DNA of 64,000 nt from IMG/VR virus record IMGVR_UViG_3300042350_004191, positions 146,587-210,586 of that record; one strand, 5' to 3'. A program made the translations under genes and the position numbers. This document shows, in pieces, positions 235-63,516 of this stretch; position 1 is the first letter of the stretch; each line of letters opens with the position of its first letter. The notes under the pieces are model-generated. The model was given only the letters and a program-made list of their open reading frames with translations, was not told where the DNA came from and did not search any database.

Positions 235-1539
235 ATGGCTTTAAAAATTAAACAAAACACCGAACAAAACGACAGAAAAACCGTTTATGAATTTTCATGT
301 GTTAGAAGAGCTATCCCATTCCCACCACTAGGAACAACTACTAATTTACTGAATTTTAATTATATTGCCTTAAATGCAATAAAAATACCGCCACCACTAC
401 CAGTAGAAATGCCTGAAACCTCATTACCGAGAGTTTTAAATTATTATGCAGACTATGGTGGTTGTGGTTTTTGGCGAATGATATGGCCTGAATTTCTTTT
501 AAATTTCTATCAGAAGATGGTTTGTACTGGAATGACACAAATGGTCTTAGATACCCGTTTTTATTCCACTATAAGGGCTATAAGGTTCCAAAGACAAGCT
601 ACAGATCATCAAATGATGTTTATTAAAGAGCTTAATAAGGTTAAGAAAGACCTTAACCTAAGATTATTGTATGAAGTAGATGATGTAGTCTTCAAAGAAG
701 ATATTCCAGAATATAATCGTTGTAGAGATGCATTTAATGATGATAAAATTGTCAAAAATATTTTAGAAATCATAGAAATGATGGATGAAATGACAGTAAC
801 TTGTCAATTCATGAAAGATTATTATATCGAAAAAACTGGAAATAAAAAAATTACAGTTATTCCAAATTATGCCCCCAAATTTTGGCTGGATAGATTTTAT
901 AATCCTGAAAAACTAGAAGAGAATTTTGAAAAAAACAAAAAACGCCCAAGAATATTATATTCTGGTTCTGGAACTCATATAGATGTTCTTAATAGAACGG
1001 GTATGAAAGATGATTTTAGTCATGTAATTGACCAAATTATAAAAGCTAGAAAGAAATTTAAGTTTGTTTGGAAGGGTTGTTATCCATTAGCACTAAGACC
1101 CTTCATTGATAGCGGTGAAATGGAATATGTTGATTGGTCGCCTTTACCTGATTACCCTAAAGGTTTGATGGATACAAATTGCAATGCAACTTTTGCACCT
1201 TTAATTGATAATATTTTCAATAAATCAAAAAGTAACATTAAAATGGTTGAATCTGGTGCATTAGGTATGCCCGGTGCATATCAAAATTTATGCACTTATG
1301 AAATGGCCGAACACAGATTTGATAAAGGTACAGATTTAATTGAAAAACTTGAATACATTACCTCTGATGTCGATAGATATATGAAAGAATCACAAAAAGC
1401 ACGAAAATTCGCAGAAGGTCTTTGGTTAGAAGATCATATAAACGAATATGAGGGTCTATATTTGACTGCATGGGGTTCAAAAGAACGTAATGAGAAATAT
1501 CCGAGCTTGATTTCTCTCAATAAAGATCAGATAATATAG
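235..1539 (+). CDS. GT-B fold glycosyltransferase (GT4-like)
   Basis: GCGFWRM..P near N-terminus, YSGSGTH, and FAPLIDNIFNKSKSNIKMVESGALGMP donor-binding motif typical of phage GT-B enzymes. Confidence 0.75.
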   Translation: MALKIKQNTEQNDRKTVYEFSCVRRAIPFPPLGTTTNLLNFNYIALNAIKIPPPLPVEMPETSLPRVLNYYADYGGCGFWRMIWPEFLLNFYQKMVCTGMTQMVLDTRFYSTIRAIRFQRQATDHQMMFIKELNKVKKDLNLRLLYEVDDVVFKEDIPEYNRCRDAFNDDKIVKNILEIIEMMDEMTVTCQFMKDYYIEKTGNKKITVIPNYAPKFWLDRFYNPEKLEENFEKNKKRPRILYSGSGTHIDVLNRTGMKDDFSHVIDQIIKARKKFKFVWKGCYPLALRPFIDSGEMEYVDWSPLPDYPKGLMDTNCNATFAPLIDNIFNKSKSNIKMVESGALGMPGAYQNLCTYEMAEHRFDKGTDLIEKLEYITSDVDRYMKESQKARKFAEGLWLEDHINEYEGLYLTAWGSKERNEKYPSLISLNKDQII

Positions 1540-1546
1540 GCCAATC

Positions 1547-4120
1547 ATGGCATATCGAAATATCGCATACGACAACAATAACTGTTGTATCCATCTCTGG
1601 ACATGGGACGAGGATGGACAGCGTGTTAAGTTAGAAACCTCCTATGAACCTAGTTTGTATGTAGAAAGCGCATCATCCAATGATGCTTTGTCGATATATA
1701 ATACCAATTTAAAGAAAATATCGTTTAAAAACAATTATTACCGATCAAAGTATGTTAATGAAACTCCGATTAAGCGTATTTTCCAAAATTTATCTGTTGA
1801 ACAAGATTTTTTGTTAAATACCTACCGTGACGATTTAAAAGATCCAGATTTTGGTAAACACCCACTAAAGATTTTTTTCTGGGACATAGAAACATATAGT
1901 CCAAACTCTTTTCCAGAACCCAGTAAAGCAGCAGATCCTATTAATCTGATTACACTTTATGACAGTTTATCCAAAAAATATTATAGTTGGGGATTGAAAG
2001 AATATGTTTCTGATGATGAGAATGTAATTTATACACATTGTAAGAGTGAATATTATATAATAGAAAAGTTTTTAACATTTTGGCAACAAGATCCACCAGA
2101 TATTATGTGTGGTTGGAATACAGAATCCTTCGACGTACCTTATTTGATCAATAGAATAAAAAATTTAAAAGGTGAAGACGAATATAAAAGACTTTCTCCT
2201 ATAGAAAACGTCTATTGTAGAGAAGGTGTTGTTATAAACAAGTACAACAAACCAATAGATAAATGGTACATCAGTGGAATTTCTAACCTCGACTACATGA
2301 TCATCTATAAAGCCTTCTCCAGAGGAGATTCAGAATCATATAGCTTAAACTTTATAGCTGAAAAGGAACTTAAGGAAGGTAAAATTGATTTTGGTGGCAG
2401 TAATTTGGCTATGTTAGCAGATAAAGATTGGGATACCTTTGTAAAGTATAATATTCAAGATGTAAAACTTCTTGTAAAATTGGAAGACACCTTAAAATAT
2501 TTGAAGCTAGTACGCAATTTATCATATAAGGGATTCATTCCTTTTGAAAAGGCTACAGGAAAAGTTTCGATGATTACTGGAGCGGTTGCACACGAAGCCT
2601 TGTTACAAGGCAAAATGATCCCCACATTCAAAACGGACAACAACAAAACAGAATTTACAGGCGGTTATGTCCACGAACCTGAAAGAGGCATTCATAATGC
2701 ATTAGTAAGCTATGATGCTAATAGTCTATATCCAAATACGATTATATCCTTGAACATCTCACCAGAAACAAAGATTGGAAAGATTGTAAACAAAGAAGAA
2801 AATGTTTATTCCCTAAGATTAATAAACGGAAAAGTTGTAACTTTGGATAAGGATAAATTTGAAAAGCTTATACACAAAGAAAAATTATGTATATCAGACT
2901 ATGATGTGTTATATACGCAAAAATTTAAAGGCGTAGTTCCGTGTTTGATTGATAAACTTTATAAAGAACGTGTTGATACCAAAAAAGAAATGCAAAAGTA
3001 TCAAACAATCTTAAACAAGGAAAAAGATTTTAAAGTAAAACAACAGATTGAAGAAAAAATACAAGACTTGGATACACAACAAAACGTTTATAAGCTTGTT
3101 TTAAATTCAATATATGGAACCTTTGCTCAAAGATTTTCTCCTTTGTTTGATATTGACCATTCTGCGAGTGTAACATTAACGGGACAGTCAGTGGTTAAAA
3201 AAGCATCCGATATTGTTTATGAATATGCTGTTCAGAAAGGTTTTGTTGGTGACAAAAAAAATATTTATATATACGGTGATACTGACAGCATTTATATAAC
3301 TATAAATCCTATATTAAAAATAACGGGTAAACAGTTTTTAGTGGACAATAAAATAACCGACGAGGCTTCAAAGGTTGTTGATGAGATAGATAATAAATTA
3401 AATACAGATATAATTGAATGGTCGAAACAGAAACACAATTCAATAGACCCAAGATTTGTTTTTAAACGTGAAACTATTTGTGACAAGGCACTTTTCTTGG
3501 AAAAGAAAATGTACATTCTTCATATTATTGATAAAGAAGGTTATAAACCAAAAGATCCATTTGTTTATAAAGGGATAGAACTAGCTCGTTCAACTTTATC
3601 CAAAGAAGTTAAAGATCTTATTAAAAATGTTGTTGAGTCTGTTATTTTATCAGAAGATAAAACTGAAAGTGATAGAATTTTTTTCGATTCTTATAGCAGA
3701 TTTAAAGATATGGACGTAGTAACCATATCTAAACGAGCAAAAGTTTCTGATATAGAAAAATATCAAAGTAGAAGTGATGGCTTTAAAATCTATAAAGGAA
3801 CGCCCATGCATGTTAAAGGATCGATTTATTACAACAATCTACTTAAAAAGTACAGTGTTGATCATTTGTATGAAAGAATAACAAACGGAACCAAAGTTAA
3901 GATTTTTTATGCAAATAAAAACAAATATAATATACAAGTTTTTTCTTTTTTAGATGAAATGCCTGAAGAAATTATAAAAGATGTAGCACCGGATTACGAT
4001 AAAATGTTTCAAAAGAACGTGTTTCCACCATTAGAAAGAATTTATAAATGTATTGGTTGGGATACACCTTCTCTTGTGCAAAACTATTGCACTGATTTAA
4101 CTGAATTATTTAAAGATTAA
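1547..4120 (+). CDS. gp43: Family B DNA polymerase
   Basis: Exo motifs WDIET, GWNTESFD, YNIQD; polymerase motifs YDANSLYP, KLVLNSIYG, YGDTDS. Confidence 0.98.
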   Translation: MAYRNIAYDNNNCCIHLWTWDEDGQRVKLETSYEPSLYVESASSNDALSIYNTNLKKISFKNNYYRSKYVNETPIKRIFQNLSVEQDFLLNTYRDDLKDPDFGKHPLKIFFWDIETYSPNSFPEPSKAADPINLITLYDSLSKKYYSWGLKEYVSDDENVIYTHCKSEYYIIEKFLTFWQQDPPDIMCGWNTESFDVPYLINRIKNLKGEDEYKRLSPIENVYCREGVVINKYNKPIDKWYISGISNLDYMIIYKAFSRGDSESYSLNFIAEKELKEGKIDFGGSNLAMLADKDWDTFVKYNIQDVKLLVKLEDTLKYLKLVRNLSYKGFIPFEKATGKVSMITGAVAHEALLQGKMIPTFKTDNNKTEFTGGYVHEPERGIHNALVSYDANSLYPNTIISLNISPETKIGKIVNKEENVYSLRLINGKVVTLDKDKFEKLIHKEKLCISDYDVLYTQKFKGVVPCLIDKLYKERVDTKKEMQKYQTILNKEKDFKVKQQIEEKIQDLDTQQNVYKLVLNSIYGTFAQRFSPLFDIDHSASVTLTGQSVVKKASDIVYEYAVQKGFVGDKKNIYIYGDTDSIYITINPILKITGKQFLVDNKITDEASKVVDEIDNKLNTDIIEWSKQKHNSIDPRFVFKRETICDKALFLEKKMYILHIIDKEGYKPKDPFVYKGIELARSTLSKEVKDLIKNVVESVILSEDKTESDRIFFDSYSRFKDMDVVTISKRAKVSDIEKYQSRSDGFKIYKGTPMHVKGSIYYNNLLKKYSVDHLYERITNGTKVKIFYANKNKYNIQVFSFLDEMPEEIIKDVAPDYDKMFQKNVFPPLERIYKCIGWDTPSLVQNYCTDLTELFKD

Positions 4121-57866: not shown

Positions 57867-58880
57867 TTAAATGTTTGTCTGATCACCAGAAAAAATAATA
57901 TCATTTGGTTTTAATCCATTAATATTTTGATTAACCAAATCTTTTTTAATAATATCTTTTAATTGATCAAAGGAACCTGCTTCCAATGATGTTTCATAAA
58001 AATTATTAATTCGAAATATTCCTACTTTTTCAAATACATCACATTTGTTGATGATTACTTTGGTCGCACCTGAAAGATTTACAGCCTTATTTAATCTTCC
58101 AAAGTTTAACCAATTCACAAGTCTTTTTCTACCTGTGGTAGAACCAAACTCTTGACCAAGTTCAATTAATTGGTTGAGTTTTTCATCATTCCAAAGACAT
58201 TCTGGAAACAATGGATCGACACCACTTTTGGTATCATAAATTTTTGCTACACCGATAATGTCACGAATTTTCTTCGGTGAAAATCCAAGTGAACACGCAT
58301 TATGGGGAAATGTTTCAGAACTTGTTACATAAGGATAATTTCCATAGTTAACATCCAACCATATGCTTTGAGCACCTTCACAAAGAATTTTTCCTTCTAG
58401 TTTTCCATCCCAAAGAAAGTCTTTTAATGGATTAAAATTTGCTTTGCTAATCTGAATGCCAACACGATTTGCTTTGTCTGCATAACAAGGGGCAATACCC
58501 TGACCAGTAGTTCCAAGTTTAGGTTTCAGATGTTTCAGATCATATTCGATATGTGCATCTGTGATCACATGAACATTTGGATGAACTTTTACCAAAGACG
58601 TATCAAAACCATTTTGTTTTAAGTATTCAATTTCTTTGAGAAATTTATCGACATTCAAAACACAGTTTGGACCGATAACAGATTTTTTTCCGTGAAAAAC
58701 ACCAGAAGGAATCAGATGAGTTTTATATTTTTTCCCATCAAGATAAACAGTATGACCAGCATTTGGTCCACCATTCCAGCGACAGACCATATCATAGTCT
58801 TTCGCCATTGCGCTTGAAATTTTACCCTTGCCTTCATCCCCCCAAGCAAGACCGACAATTACATCAACATGTTTAATCAT
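57867..58880 (-). CDS. purA: Adenylosuccinate synthetase (short form)
   Basis: WGDEGKGKI, GGPNAGHT, GTTGQGI.P, EGAQ..LDV..G.YPYVTSS, TTGRKR. Confidence 0.95.
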   Translation of the reverse strand: MIKHVDVIVGLAWGDEGKGKISSAMAKDYDMVCRWNGGPNAGHTVYLDGKKYKTHLIPSGVFHGKKSVIGPNCVLNVDKFLKEIEYLKQNGFDTSLVKVHPNVHVITDAHIEYDLKHLKPKLGTTGQGIAPCYADKANRVGIQISKANFNPLKDFLWDGKLEGKILCEGAQSIWLDVNYGNYPYVTSSETFPHNACSLGFSPKKIRDIIGVAKIYDTKSGVDPLFPECLWNDEKLNQLIELGQEFGSTTGRKRLVNWLNFGRLNKAVNLSGATKVIINKCDVFEKVGIFRINNFYETSLEAGSFDQLKDIIKKDLVNQNINGLKPNDIIFSGDQTNI

Positions 58881-59145
58881 ATTCATTAAATTTAAACCAA
58901 GCATACACCAAAATACTGCACATAATCAAACCTACAGTATAATTTAAAAACCACCAAAGACCAAAAGTGGTCAAGAACATATAAACCATTCCTGAAATAT
59001 AGCCACCAATAGACATTAAAATTAACATTAAAGAAACATCTTTAGATGATTTATTTTTGAATATTTTTACGATTTGTGGAATATAACAAAGCATAAAAAA
59101 CAGCATCATCAATATTCCGAAGAATTCTGCTAAAATAGTTTTCAT
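58873..59145 (-). CDS. SemiSWEET / PQ-loop family transporter
   Basis: 90 aa, three hydrophobic helices, YIPQIVKIFKNKSSKDVS. Confidence 0.85.
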   Translation of the reverse strand: MKTILAEFFGILMMLFFMLCYIPQIVKIFKNKSSKDVSLMLILMSIGGYISGMVYMFLTTFGLWWFLNYTVGLIMCSILVYAWFKFNEYD

Positions 59146-59416: not shown

Positions 59417-59980
59417 TTATTTTTGGCGTTGGTTAATAGGTTGATAAATTTTTAATTTTTTTAATCTTTTTATAACTGCAACATCAGAAGCACCAACTAT
59501 TTTTCCTATTTTAAGATTACTTAATTTTTGAATTACGTGTAAATCATATAAATCAAAATTATCCCATTCGATTTGAGATTTTCTTTTTGCGGCACAAGTT
59601 TTTGAACAAGTTATAAGATAATTTGCTTTTTGCTTATTACAAATTGGACAATATGTTTTTCTTTTTCTTTTTTCTTTTAAATCTACAAATTTTGGAATAT
59701 TTTTTGGGATATTAGTTTTACCCGCATGATATTCTCTGTGACAGTTAGCACACAATAAAACACAATTTTCTAACTCTTTTAATAATAATTTCCATTGTTT
59801 AGGATTGGCTCTTATTCCACCAAAAGATAATGTTTTTTGTGAAGGATCAATATGATGTATATCAAAAGCTTCTTCACATTTATCATAACCACATATACAA
59901 CACTTTCCACCAAATCCCTCAACAATTAAATTTTTAGTATCTTTTCTCCAAGCCTTAACACGATCTGCATTTATACTCAT
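59417..59980 (-). mobile_element. Free-standing HNH endonuclease with zinc fingers
   Basis: CCIC, HHIDP...NCVLLCANCHREYH, CPIC...CSKTC, C-terminal HTH-like end; directly downstream of tRNA-Asn. Confidence 0.85.
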
Positions 59981-60039
59981 ATATAATACTTACATATTAT
60001 ATGTAACATTTTATATAAAGGTTTAGATATTCGTAAAAG

Positions 60040-60113
60040 CTCCTTGGGCTGGATTCGAACCAGCATGATGAACAAATTAACAGTTTGTTGGCTTACCGTT
60101 AGCCCACCAAGGA
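60040..60113 (-). tRNA. tRNA-Asn (GTT)
   Basis: TCCTTGG/CCAAGGA, ACAAA-CTGTTAA-TTTGT, TTCGAAT. Confidence 0.93.
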
Positions 60114-60119
60114 ATTAAA

Positions 60120-60815
60120 TTTTCGGCTGTTTTTATCCGCCATCATTTTCTTATCCAGAATCAAGCGGGACTCCCTATCTTTTCAGACGAGTCAACTGAC
60201 GCACACCGTATGCGAGTCATGGCAACTATCCCCCTTATTGCTGTAACGAACAGCTTCTATTCATCAGTGGGTTCTGACTAGAATCTCGTTAGGATTCTCG
60301 GATTAATTATGAGACGGAAGATCGTGAGGAAGTGGCACTTTAGGCTATGTGCCTAACGCCGAACCAACAGCCGAAGCACCGCATCTTCACCCTTTCGGTT
60401 AACACGGTTTGTATTTCTACAACGTCTCAAAAATTGGTGTTTTTGTCGCAAACGGGACCAGACTGATGATTAAGTTGCGCCTTAATCGGCTGGCTTCTGG
60501 TTGGCAATATGCCAACATCAGAAAAACACAGAACCCTTATACAAGGGTTTTAGGTACTATCGACCTTTGGCTTTTTCCTTACCCAGAACCTACACTCTTC
60601 TTTTTTGACTCTCATTAGTAGTCTTATTCACTGTGGAACTCTATATGTCTGCCAGAACACGGACACGTATCCGTTACATAGAGAGGTAGAGTTGCATACC
60701 TTTTTATAAACCAATCCATTTATTACAGAGTTGTTAATTGGTTAGATCTTTCTCTGACCTGACGGGTTTCTCGGCAGGGTTTGTTTGATGTCGGCTAATC
60801 ACCCCGACACCAAAG
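60120..60815 (-). ncRNA. Large (~700 nt) ornate structured ncRNA, GOLLD/ROOL-class candidate
   Basis: GC-richer, no credible ORF, many hairpins and long-range complementary pairs, promoter plus boxA upstream, tRNA 6 nt downstream. Confidence 0.8.
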
Positions 60816-60822
60816 ATTAAAA

Positions 60823-60868
60823 TTTTCAAAGAACTAATATATCTTATCAGAAACTGAAAAAGAGTCAA
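60823..60868 (-). promoter_or_regulatory. sigma70-type promoter plus boxA-like element for the ncRNA-tRNA transcript
   Basis: TTGACT (60863-60868), TGnTAAGAT (-10 at 60841-60846), GTTCTTTGAAAA (60823-60834). Confidence 0.7.
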
Positions 60869-60916
60869 TAAATATTATCGGTGAAATATTATTTTTTAGC
60901 TTTTTTCTTTTGGTAT

Positions 60917-61141
60917 TTATTGTTTAGACTTTTCTTTTAACTTTTGATATTCTTCGTAATACCAATCTCTCTGATCTACTAGTTCCCAAAAATCTTTCAT
61001 ATTTAACTCTACAAGCTTTTCACACATTGTAAGTTCTTTTCTTAAATCAAGGTTAACCTTCTTGTACAATTCTAAATCCTCTTTAAGACGTTCATAGTCT
61101 TTAAGAATAAAGTCTTTATATTGTTCATCGATCATACCCAT
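60917..61141 (-). CDS. Coiled-coil hypothetical protein
   Basis: 74 aa, heptad pattern. Confidence 0.6.
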   Translation of the reverse strand: MGMIDEQYKDFILKDYERLKEDLELYKKVNLDLRKELTMCEKLVELNMKDFWELVDQRDWYYEEYQKLKEKSKQ

Positions 61142-61472: not shown

Positions 61473-61713
61473 AATTTGCAGGATATTGTGCGGGTAAACC
61501 AGCAATTTCAAACATTTTGGCACATGCAATTTGTGAGTCGTATCGGTTTTTAGTTTTGTAGAATTTTTTAATAGCTTCGATTAAAAGTTTATTTTCTTGC
61601 TCAAGAAGACGCAATCTGTCTTCGAGATTAGCCATCTCATCAAAGATATTGATTTTTCCTTGTTGCCATCTTTCAACAGCTTCTTGTGTAATTGGATTTT
61701 TTTCAGATTTCAT
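61459..61713 (-). CDS. Hypothetical protein
   Basis: 84-aa ORF, coiled coil. Confidence 0.6.
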   Translation of the reverse strand: MKSEKNPITQEAVERWQQGKINIFDEMANLEDRLRLLEQENKLLIEAIKKFYKTKNRYDSQIACAKMFEIAGLPAQYPANYERK

Positions 61714-62092
61714 TTTTATCGACCTTTTCTAATAACATTCTATCTGCAATTTTATAAACTTCAAAAAAATCTTTTTTCTCATCTTCTTCAATATAAAGCA
61801 ATCTATCTCCTACTGATTCGAGGTTTGTGCAATTTTCTTTAGAACAATATTTCAAAAATGCTATAACATAATGAGTTTCTTTGTTTTCAAAACAATTTTT
61901 ACTAATAGAACAATTATTATGATAGATAGCATCGCCCCGATCTTCCCAACCATCTTTAAGATAATTTTCTAGCTCTCCATAATATCTGTTAGGATGATAC
62001 TTTACAATAGAGCATTCATACTTCGCAACCTTGGAAGTTTTGCCAATATATGCTACAGACTCTGTACCAATGTTATTGATTCGAACTTTCAT
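61703..62092 (-). CDS. Hypothetical protein
   Basis: 129-aa ORF. Confidence 0.65.
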   Translation of the reverse strand: MKVRINNIGTESVAYIGKTSKVAKYECSIVKYHPNRYYGELENYLKDGWEDRGDAIYHNNCSISKNCFENKETHYVIAFLKYCSKENCTNLESVGDRLLYIEEDEKKDFFEVYKIADRMLLEKVDKNEI

Positions 62093-62204
62093 CTTTTTTA
62101 TCTTCTGGTGTAAAAATAGGTTCTAAACTTTTGATAAGTTCATTAAGTTCAGTAATTGTTAGTTTACTGATTTCTTCCATAATTTGTTTTAATTTATCGC
62201 TCAT
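62073..62204 (-). CDS. 43-aa protein resembling only the N-terminal dimerisation domain of ribosomal protein bL12 (not in ORF track)
   Basis: MSDKLKQIMEEISKLTITELNELIKSLEPIFTPEDKKDESSNQ; ATGA overlap with the upstream gene. Confidence 0.7.
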   Translation of the reverse strand: MSDKLKQIMEEISKLTITELNELIKSLEPIFTPEDKKDESSNQ

Positions 62205-62500
62205 GTTGTTATTTCATTATACAAAGATTCTATGTTGTGGCAAATTTCTTTTCCTTCTTTGTCCCAAGCTTTCATATCTTCTCTACCGTCTTTTTCGTAG
62301 ATATACCAATTAATCCATTCTACTCCTTCTTTACCAAACGCTTCGACCATCAAAGGATGCACTACTTTTCTGTAATAATCCTCATTAAAGGATAACAAAT
62401 CCACTCCATGTTTATAAATTTCATGAGTCTTGTTATTTTGATTCTGAATACCTTCAATCAAAGTTTTAAATTTGTCTAGAGTCATAATCAAATTTCCCAA
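62201..62500 (-). CDS. Hypothetical protein
   Basis: 99 aa, EWINWYIYE motif. Confidence 0.65.
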   Translation of the reverse strand: MGNLIMTLDKFKTLIEGIQNQNNKTHEIYKHGVDLLSFNEDYYRKVVHPLMVEAFGKEGVEWINWYIYEKDGREDMKAWDKEGKEICHNIESLYNEITT

Positions 62501-62748
62501 ATTGTCCAGCTTACACTATCTCCACATTGATCGCAAGGTTCTTTTTCATATTTGTAATCATTATATTCAAACATTTCAACCACATCCAGTAATTGAATTT
62601 CACGATTATCAAACATCTCCCTTATTCTTTCAATAAGATAATCAAAGATTGCATATTCTTTTTCTCTTGGAATATCAGCAACGGATTCACCATCAACAGT
62701 GAAATCATAAGCCGTACAACCTTCTGTTTTTAAAAACTTATGTTTCAT
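62488..62748 (-). CDS. Hypothetical protein with C-terminal CxxC
   Basis: EPCDQCGD. Confidence 0.65.
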   Translation of the reverse strand: MKHKFLKTEGCTAYDFTVDGESVADIPREKEYAIFDYLIERIREMFDNREIQLLDVVEMFEYNDYKYEKEPCDQCGDSVSWTIWEI

Positions 62749-62935
62749 GAATTATAGTTTTAACTTTATCATTATGTTGCAATCTTGCTACATGTTTGGA
62801 CGCTTCTTCGAATGTATTAAAGTCGGCAGGGAAATAATGACAACCAGCATCAACCCAAAACAGTCCAAACATCTTCCATTGAACTTGGAATCTCGACCCA
62901 TCGTAATATTGATATTCTTTAATTCTGTATTTCAT
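62738..62935 (-). CDS. MKYRIKE-family small protein, copy 3
   Basis: Paralog of 63316-63516 and 62936-63160. Confidence 0.75.
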   Translation of the reverse strand: MKYRIKEYQYYDGSRFQVQWKMFGLFWVDAGCHYFPADFNTFEEASKHVARLQHNDKVKTIIHET

Positions 62936-63160
62936 TTATGATATATGGGAATGATACAATATCTGTTTAGAGCTATCAAGCTTTTTCTTGTTTAGTGCAT
63001 CTTTAAAGATTTCAATATGATCTCTGGCTCCTTTTAAATGAGGATATACTACTGGATCACTTTTTATTGTGGTCATATTTCTCCAGAAAAGGATTTTTTT
63101 ATACTGAGGGTAAAAGTAATGTTTACCCATCTTTATTTCTTCTTTAATTCTGTATTTCAT
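62936..63160 (-). CDS. MKYRIKE-family small protein, copy 2
   Basis: MKYRIKE...YPQYKKILFW. Confidence 0.7.
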   Translation of the reverse strand: MKYRIKEEIKMGKHYFYPQYKKILFWRNMTTIKSDPVVYPHLKGARDHIEIFKDALNKKKLDSSKQILYHSHIS

Positions 63161-63326
63161 TTGCTCCTAATTGTGCTAGTTCTGAAAGCTCATCCCATTT
63201 ACTGTTCTGTGACAGGTAGTCAATGAATTCACTTGTGCTGATCCATTTATTGTCTACAAGAATTTCTCTAGGGCGAACTTTGTAAATAGTATCTTTAATC
63301 TTTATAAAGGTATTATCAGATTTCAT
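63144..63326 (-). CDS. Hypothetical protein
   Basis: 60-aa ORF overlapping both neighbours. Confidence 0.55.
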   Translation of the reverse strand: MKSDNTFIKIKDTIYKVRPREILVDNKWISTSEFIDYLSQNSKWDELSELAQLGANEIQN

Positions 63327-63516
63327 GAACTATGGGTTTGGCATTTTTGTTATGTATAAGCATAGCAGCAAATTCAGATGCTTCAGTTAAAGTGTTAAAT
63401 TCTGGAACATATCCACCTAAAGATTCATAATCAACCCAAAAAAGACCAAATATCTTTTGTTGCACATAGTATTTTGGACCATTATACCAATTGTATTCTT
63501 TAATTCTGTATTTCAT
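63316..63516 (-). CDS. MKYRIKE-family small protein, copy 1
   Basis: MKYRIKEY...YVQQKIFGLFWVD...FNT..EAS. Confidence 0.75.
   Translation of the reverse strand: MKYRIKEYNWYNGPKYYVQQKIFGLFWVDYESLGGYVPEFNTLTEASEFAAMLIHNKNAKPIVHEI

Follow-up and report, generated by a model that had tools for sequence, protein, structure and literature searches.

A large freshwater phage is predicted, from profile searches and a modelled fold, to encode a headless form of the ribosomal stalk protein bL12: a 43-residue microprotein that has the anchor domain of bL12 and lacks both the hinge and the factor-binding domain. The coding sequence (62073..62204, minus strand, stop codon included) is documented by the list of open reading frames (ORFs), by a match to the Pfam family PF16320, by 40+ homologues and by pN/pS. 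It lies in the final 64 kb of an IMG/VR viral record of 210,586 bp that CheckV rates as 99% complete; this stretch of 64,000 nucleotides is referred to below as the window.

Homology to the bL12 N-terminal domain

What is the evidence that the microprotein is a bL12 N-terminal domain (NTD)? First, it matches the Pfam profile for this domain (PF16320, Ribosomal_L12_N) with 28.1 bits and an E-value of 1.7e-6, against a curated gathering cut-off of 25 bits, and its residues 4-28 fall on positions 1-25 of the 48 in the profile. When the 210,586-bp genome is scanned in six frames, the microprotein is the sole PF16320 match (26.3 bits), and most of its homologues carry a precomputed PF16320 assignment. 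Second, a profile of the phage family leads back to bL12. Among PDB sequences, its best matches are the NTD chains of Thermotoga maritima L7/L12 (1dd3 and 1zav; E-value ~1e-5, 13 of 26 residues identical), and in whole bacterial genomes translated in six frames, it matches the first ~30 codons of a frame of 125-130 residues, rplL, in register. Detecting the homology requires profiles, because a single-sequence phmmer search of 1.84 billion representatives recovered only four short relatives, none of them a cellular bL12. Third, AlphaFold2, run on the family alignment, predicts a helix at residues 3-13, a three-residue loop and a second helix at residues 17-31, with pLDDT above 90 for residues 1-30 and a disordered tail. 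The two helices are antiparallel in the prediction, as in the solved L7/L12 NTDs. A Foldseek search of the PDB with this model gave a single match, 1zav_U, which is the L12 NTD bound to L10 (TM-score 0.81 by target, rmsd 2.3 Å, 48% identity), and the best 30 of 30 matches in the Swiss-Prot AlphaFold library were bL12, aligned at residues 1-31; the E-values of these matches are ~1 and not significant, the model being tiny, so the weight of the comparison rests on the exclusivity of the matches. The family has one distinctive feature at the end of helix 2, which reads LEPIF-TP versus LEEKFGV in the cellular consensus, with Pro29 nearly invariant. Judged by profile and predicted structure, the microprotein is a genuine bL12 NTD and a member of the L12_N domain family.

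Absence of the hinge and C-terminal domain

The other half of bL12 is missing. The C-terminal domain, PF00542, has no match in any frame of the 99%-complete genome and none in five related records, two of which are 100% and 92% complete, and the microprotein ORF ends 12 residues past helix 2. There is no match in the genome to PF00466 (uL10) either, and the gene is without the rplJ adjacency of bL12 genes. The NCBIfam equivalog model for bL12, TIGR00855, gives 19 bits against a cut-off of 84.4, and the match spans only positions 5-32 of the 125 in that profile. Because the hinge, the C-terminal domain, the operon context and the equivalog score are all lacking, the microprotein is not bL12 proper. 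Neither the PADLOC families nor, at E-values up to 1, the PHROG families contain a match to it.

Comparison with cellular bL12 (L7/L12, the rplL product, recognized by TIGR00855 and by PF16320 plus PF00542) makes the same point. The two have in common the two-helix hairpin, the hydrophobic pattern LT[IV]xELxEL[IV]KxLE and an acidic protein, and residues 1-31 show an identity of 50% over 26 residues with the T. maritima NTD and 61-65% with some Patescibacteria-type bL12 proteins, the best among those listed. However, cellular bL12 has ~120-130 residues, an Ala/Pro-rich hinge and a C-terminal domain, and its gene follows rplJ, whereas the microprotein has 43 residues and none of these. A closer counterpart in length is the crystallized L10-(L12 NTD)6 fragment in 1zav, in which 30 residues of the same segment suffice to dimerise and to bind L10. 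That fragment is a laboratory construct, whereas the microprotein is a natural gene product with an acidic tail, for which binding is predicted only.

Pieces of bL12 have been found in phages before. Mizuno et al. (2019) defined virus-encoded bL12 by PF00542, and the L12_N model is not in their Pfam list (PMC6375957). The microprotein and the L7/L12 proteins of that study and of huge phages have in common that a piece of bL12 is carried by a phage, is under purifying selection and has been proposed to act at the stalk. But the Mizuno proteins consist of the C-terminal, factor-binding head, often inside larger proteins, and the genomes of the cultivated phages concerned are below 80 kb; the microprotein is the opposite half, an anchor without a head. 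In proteins as defined by Mizuno et al., contacts with uL11, EF-G and EF-Tu are made by residues of PF00542, a domain absent from this genome. Al-Shayeb et al. (2020) listed L7/L12 among the genes of huge phages and left it undissected (PMC7162821). The sequence-only reading that preceded this analysis had taken the microprotein for a bL12 NTD without a C-terminal domain, had suggested a search with the Ribosomal_L12_N profile and had stated that reported phage bL12 homologs generally include the C-terminal domain. These points hold up: the profile score lies above the curated cut-off and the fold matches are to bL12 only, making the likeness more than chance; neither a hinge nor PF00542 occurs in the genome or its complete relatives; and the statement agrees with the PF00542-based definition used in 2019 (PMC6375957).

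Relatives of the microprotein are not new to sequence databases. In the ESM Atlas, 97 of the 100 nearest clusters are proteins of 37-41 residues that consist of L12_N only. Within the literature searched, PF16320 and Ribosomal_L12_N go unmentioned. Hence the sequences are already in databases, and we could not find the headless architecture described in the literature searched.

Gene layout and neighborhood

The microprotein ORF has 43 codons, an ATG start and a TAA stop. Its ATG (62204-62202) shares three bases with the TGA (62203-62201) of an upstream 99-residue ORF in an ATGA arrangement, and at its 3′ end 20 nt are common to the next ORF (61703..62092), which is read in another frame. The two-helix core, a homologue of the dimerisation and uL10-binding domain of bL12 as far as sequence and model indicate, occupies codons 1-31 (62112..62204, minus strand). 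Codons 32-43 and the stop codon (62073..62111, minus strand) make up a short, variable, net-acidic tail that is predicted to be disordered (pLDDT 41-63). The tail, TPEDKKDESSNQ, has 12 residues and a net charge of −2, and the whole protein has a net charge of −4. Tails across the 33 family members range from 5 to 29 residues, with a median of 9, and are net negative in all. The acidic tail stands where the hinge and C-terminal domain of bL12 would be. The sequence-only reading gave no strand for the 43-residue ORF, which is on the minus strand, but was correct in its position, its translation, its ATGA coupling to the upstream gene and its short acidic tail. In related phages, the JGI annotation names the protein either “ribosomal protein L7/L12” or “hypothetical protein”.

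A sigma-70-like site, TTGCCA-16-TATAAT (62216..62243, minus strand), ends 12 nt 5′ of the ATG and agrees with the consensus at 11 of 12 positions. Such sites are not more numerous in the region than in shuffled sequence, and the sequence upstream of the gene is unconserved among relatives, so the site is a weak lead to a putative microprotein promoter.

The genes around it are small, overlap, are tightly packed and run on the same strand, and YopX and PQ-loop genes are close by; this block looks like an early or host-takeover region and may be one. The upstream ORF (62201..62500, minus strand; 99 residues, or 94 from its first ATG at 62485) has no family match and is not the 5′ neighbor in most relatives. 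The downstream 129-residue ORF (61703..62092, minus strand) has no assigned function, and its homologue is placed elsewhere in the block at the related loci L007 and L008. About 1 kb downstream of the microprotein gene is a 74-residue coiled-coil-like ORF (60917..61141, minus strand), a homologue of which lies directly downstream of the microprotein gene at locus L003. The small gene families around the microprotein gene are drawn from the same pool in the relatives, but their order is shuffled and the immediate neighbors differ. A frameshift fusion of the microprotein to the downstream 129-residue ORF was considered and rejected, the downstream gene being different between relatives.

Other features of this part of the window are of interest in their own right. 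Three paralogous ORFs of 65-74 residues, all starting MKYRIKE, lie at 62738..62935, 62936..63160 and 63316..63516 (minus strand), and their families recur, shuffled, in the relatives. A 187-residue ORF (59417..59980, minus strand) with CxxC, HH and CANCH motifs resembles an HNH homing endonuclease by its translation and adjoins a tRNA-Asn gene (60039-60113). The ~800 bp that follow (60114..60916) contain neither an ORF longer than 44 residues, whichever the strand, nor a match to Rfam at E-values up to 0.01, in a genome that is otherwise densely coding. Finally, an adenylosuccinate synthetase-like gene with a GDEGKGK motif is found at 57867..58904 (minus strand), with tRNA-Tyr and tRNA-Gln genes just downstream.

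Conservation and selection

Short homologues of the microprotein number 32 in a word-indexed search of 5.8 billion proteins and 41 in a profile search, and nearly all have 29-44 residues. They come from lake metagenomes, several of them on phage contigs of 150-225 kb. A scan of other IMG/VR clades for the core motif showed it to be confined to this clade; the one extra match is not bL12-like. An alignment of 33 sequences has 15 invariant columns among the first 31 and another 11 with at least 90% conservation, whereas the tail is variable in both sequence and length. Codon differences in the core among eight related loci are overwhelmingly synonymous, with a pooled pN/pS of 0.14. For example, the window and L007 differ in the core by 6 synonymous and 0 non-synonymous changes, and the comparison of the window with L010 gives a pS of 0.66 and a pN of 0.013. 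Synonymous sites are near saturation while residues 1-31 are almost invariant. Within pairs of genomes, the microprotein is 69-94% identical, versus 32-82% for neighboring small proteins, and in several pairs, the 31-residue core is identical; in the same pairs, it tops every neighboring small gene in conservation.

A pseudogene or a chance ORF is rejected on account of the near-invariant core and the mostly synonymous differences. More broadly, it is extremely improbable that the gene has no function of its own, whether as the decaying remnant of a full-length phage bL12 or as an amphipathic ORF that arose by chance in AT-rich DNA. The protein is very short, helices rich in Lys, Glu, Ile and Leu are common in AT-rich genomes, and the Foldseek E-values are not significant owing to length. 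Against this stand strong purifying selection at a locus where synonymous sites are close to saturated, a short length that is kept in 40+ clusters, the lack of a C-terminal-domain remnant in any frame, a Pfam score above the curated cut-off, fold matches that are bL12 in 30 of 30 cases, and reciprocal profile matches that fall only on bL12 N-termini, in register.

The gene is not present in every relative. In contigs from the lake run X6, the microprotein gene is kept and the sequence diverges right at the gene borders. In one X6 contig, from a relative that is ~82% identical, position 62092 is joined to 62490, such that both the microprotein gene and the upstream 99-residue gene are absent. 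Since at least one related lake phage is without it, the microprotein gene is accessory, and together with the upstream gene, it acts like an insertion/deletion cassette within the population of phages. The conservation of the microprotein, its shuffled neighbors and its absence from one relative therefore describe an autonomous, accessory and strongly selected module. A run labelled as RNA, which probably consists of DNA, covers only the neighboring 86-residue gene in a relative.

The phage and its bS21 gene

Genes in the window encode a tail sheath, a baseplate spike, a T4-type large terminase, a family-B DNA polymerase, a DnaB helicase and a class II ribonucleotide reductase. There are six tRNA genes, and the GC content is 31-32%. 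DNA of this phage is present in lake-water and freshwater metagenomes of many studies. The best match of its large terminase (TerL) to a cultured phage is ~34% identical, and searches of 50,697 GenBank phage records with the locus (blastn) and the protein (tblastn) found nothing meaningful. The phage belongs to a clade of freshwater myoviruses of ~150-225 kb.

The phage also encodes a 70-residue homologue of ribosomal protein bS21. The gene lies outside the window (G000:C1:9618-9755; 1480..1692 of locus L009, minus strand), and its scores of 29.8 bits with Pfam and 30.4 bits with TIGR00030 are both above cut-off. All five related viral records have bS21, 6-7 kb from the microprotein gene; that is, the microprotein gene travels with the phage bS21 gene. 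Phage bS21, known from the pelagiphage HTVC008M and from freshwater Bacteroidetes phages (PMC9723584), is likewise a small, exchangeable ribosomal protein of large aquatic phages with ~31-33% GC. However, bS21 is a complete protein able to replace the host copy, whereas the microprotein is a truncated domain that would be unable to recruit factors. L12 is not mentioned in the paper on the freshwater bS21 phages (PMC9723584).

Possible functions

What might a headless bL12 do in an infected cell? In bL12, the NTD forms a two-helix hairpin, and two NTDs make an antiparallel four-helix bundle on a ten-residue segment of the C-terminal helix of uL10; bL12 makes no contact with rRNA, and recruitment of IF2, EF-Tu, EF-G and RF3 falls to its hinge and C-terminal domain (PMC3299993, PMC4592705). 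The NTD is thus the dimerisation and uL10-binding module of bL12 (PMC3299993). Given these domain roles, a protein made of the NTD only would keep both anchoring functions and lack the working head. With one rather than two L12 dimers per ribosome, IF2-dependent subunit joining is 2-fold slower and EF-G steps are 1.6-fold slower (PMC3299993).

After infection, the microprotein may enter the host stalk through the ancestral bL12 interface, either as homodimers at the uL10 sites (helix alpha-8) or as heterodimers with host bL12. Stalk positions would then carry fewer C-terminal domains or none, altering the recruitment of IF2, EF-Tu, EF-G and RF3. Candidate benefits to the phage would be a dampening of host translation, a bias in initiation or a docking tag for a phage factor, and the microprotein and phage bS21 could be parts of one ribosome-remodelling programme. 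On balance, docking in the host stalk, with a lowered or changed complement of C-terminal domains, seems probable by a modest measure, judging from the domain that is kept and the domain that is missing. That the core is exceptionally well conserved by comparison with the phage genes around it would fit a slowly evolving host target. It is also plausible that the microprotein acts as a decoy, displacing host bL12 and throttling translation or blocking stalk-dependent toxins. No bacterial toxin or defence that depends on the stalk is known to us. Several considerations count against a role in the stalk. Helix 2 ends in LEPIF-TP with its nearly invariant proline, and the interface could differ from that of bL12. 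A dominant-negative stalk protein would slow translation of the phage as well. The closest cellular NTDs among the matches listed are only 61-65% identical and belong to Patescibacteria MAGs, an unlikely host, and the microprotein gene is accessory. Oleinikov et al. are said to have reported in 1998 that single-headed L7/L12 dimers still support translation; because such dimers stay active, mixed dimers might have mild effects.

A metagenomic relative suggests an extension of the stalk-docking model. P0057 (2523-2804 of locus L156, plus strand) is a 93-residue protein in which the bL12-NTD core (~residues 1-30, 26 bits with Pfam L12_N) is followed by the C-terminal ~55 residues of the 74-residue family; the fusion is known from a single JGI metagenome contig and may be an assembly artefact. 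Such a fusion is as expected if the NTD serves as an anchor. The broader proposal is that the bL12 NTD is a ribosome-stalk docking tag in this clade of large freshwater phages, that headless or mixed dimers on uL10 retune the GTPase-associated center together with bS21, and that in some relatives the tag delivers a phage domain, as in P0057. It is a tentative proposal, and we hold it to be possible rather than probable. The fusion is open to both readings: it may link the domain to a phage partner, or it may tether a payload to the stalk.

The first of these readings of P0057 leads to an alternative in which the hairpin was captured from bL12 and is now an adaptor for a phage partner, such as a uL10-alpha-8-like helix or the 74-residue coiled-coil family, with no role on the ribosome. 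Besides the fusion in P0057, the position of the 74-residue family directly downstream in L003 and 1 kb downstream here is consistent with this alternative. So is the altered surface suggested by the derived, nearly invariant Pro29 and by the missing FGV motif, which is otherwise universal, and so is the divergence of the family, which is evident from the failure of the single-sequence search to find cellular bL12 among the 1.84 billion representatives. However, no neighbor is fixed across relatives, meaning that there is no conserved adjacent partner gene; the fusion is one contig; both helices have the hydrophobic pattern of bL12; and conservation of the core far exceeds that of the phage proteins around it, which is a better fit to a slow host target than to a co-evolving partner. 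An adaptor that has left the ribosome is unlikely.

The microprotein might instead act away from assembled ribosomes. By pairing with free host bL12 or uL10 in the cytoplasm, it could disturb assembly of the stalk on new 50S subunits or strengthen the autorepression of rplJL, reducing ribosome production while existing ribosomes remain at work. In E. coli, the uL10-(bL12)4 complex represses translation of rplJL. The evidence from homology and conservation serves this explanation as well as it does docking in the stalk, and so does the role of the NTD as the dimerisation and uL10-binding module (PMC3299993). On the other hand, most documentation of rplJL autoregulation comes from E. coli and related bacteria, and ribosomes turn over slowly compared with the length of a lytic cycle. 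Sequestration of this kind is quite unlikely.

What are the implications if the stalk-docking model is correct? Phage-encoded ribosomal proteins are known, but how they act is almost wholly obscure. The microprotein is a minimal case, 43 residues long and chemically synthesizable, with a definite prediction: binding to uL10 or bL12 would remove factor-binding heads. If so, the microprotein would represent a natural ligand that remodels the GTPase-associated center or acts on it as a dominant negative. It would also provide a tool for titrating the copy number of bL12, and would bear on the question of why ribosomes carry 4-8 copies. In addition, surveys based only on the C-terminal domain would have overlooked a class of stalk proteins in phages. 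If the docking-tag reading is true, the two halves of bL12 would have been captured separately by phages and put to opposite uses.

Origin and host

Where did the domain come from? A degenerate motif, LT[IV]xELN[DE]L[IV]K, was scanned across 185,579 species genomes, and the matches listed are full-length bL12 genes only. Among them, the closest NTDs are those of two Patescibacteria MAGs (19 of 31 residues identical), followed by Clostridia (13-17 of 31) and then Betaproteobacteria (12 of 31). Scores with the phage-family profile are 43.7 and 42.3 bits for the two Patescibacteria, 33.2 for the best Clostridia of the motif set, 22.1 for Dechloromonas and 17.6 for Bacteroides; in a further 400 sampled Patescibacteria, the best score is 39 bits and the bulk lie at 18-25. 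Of 401 genomes sampled each from Pseudomonadota and Bacteroidota, the profile matches 0 and 2, respectively, at an E-value of 1e-5. In ~1,200 sampled bacterial genomes, every strong match is in a full-length frame and 0 are in a short frame, and a scan of species-genome contigs with family peptides found no cellular relative. With 31 residues and an AT-biased composition, the similarity ranking names no donor. As a host, the ultra-small cell of a Patescibacteria member is unlikely for a myovirus of 210 kb.

Other clues to the host come from the rest of the genome. Upstream of its 208 ORFs of at least 100 residues, there is no enrichment for Shine-Dalgarno sequences: GGAG occurs in 3%, G makes up 7-18% at each position from −25 to −1, and the sequence is A/T-rich. 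The absence of Shine-Dalgarno sequences recalls Bacteroidota and their freshwater bS21 phages (PMC9723584), which by analogy would be a hint to the host. The Bacteroidota −7 promoter motif TAnnTTTG occurs 106 times in the window versus 109 expected, showing no enrichment. A comparison of the phage purA with 302 Bacteroidota and Pseudomonadota genomes gave no match at an E-value of 1e-60, a threshold that was too strict.

A cell-type bL12 from a metagenome bears a close resemblance to the phage protein. P0058 (2248-2634 of locus L155, plus strand) has an NTD in which 20 of 31 residues are identical to those of the phage protein, followed by an in-frame TAA beyond which the C-terminal domain continues. 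It was considered as an intermediate form of 63 residues and rejected, being a cell-type bL12 broken by the in-frame TAA, which is either a sequencing error or a sign that the metagenomic organism uses an unusual genetic code. A 53-residue ORF upstream of P0058 resembles the C-terminus of uL10.
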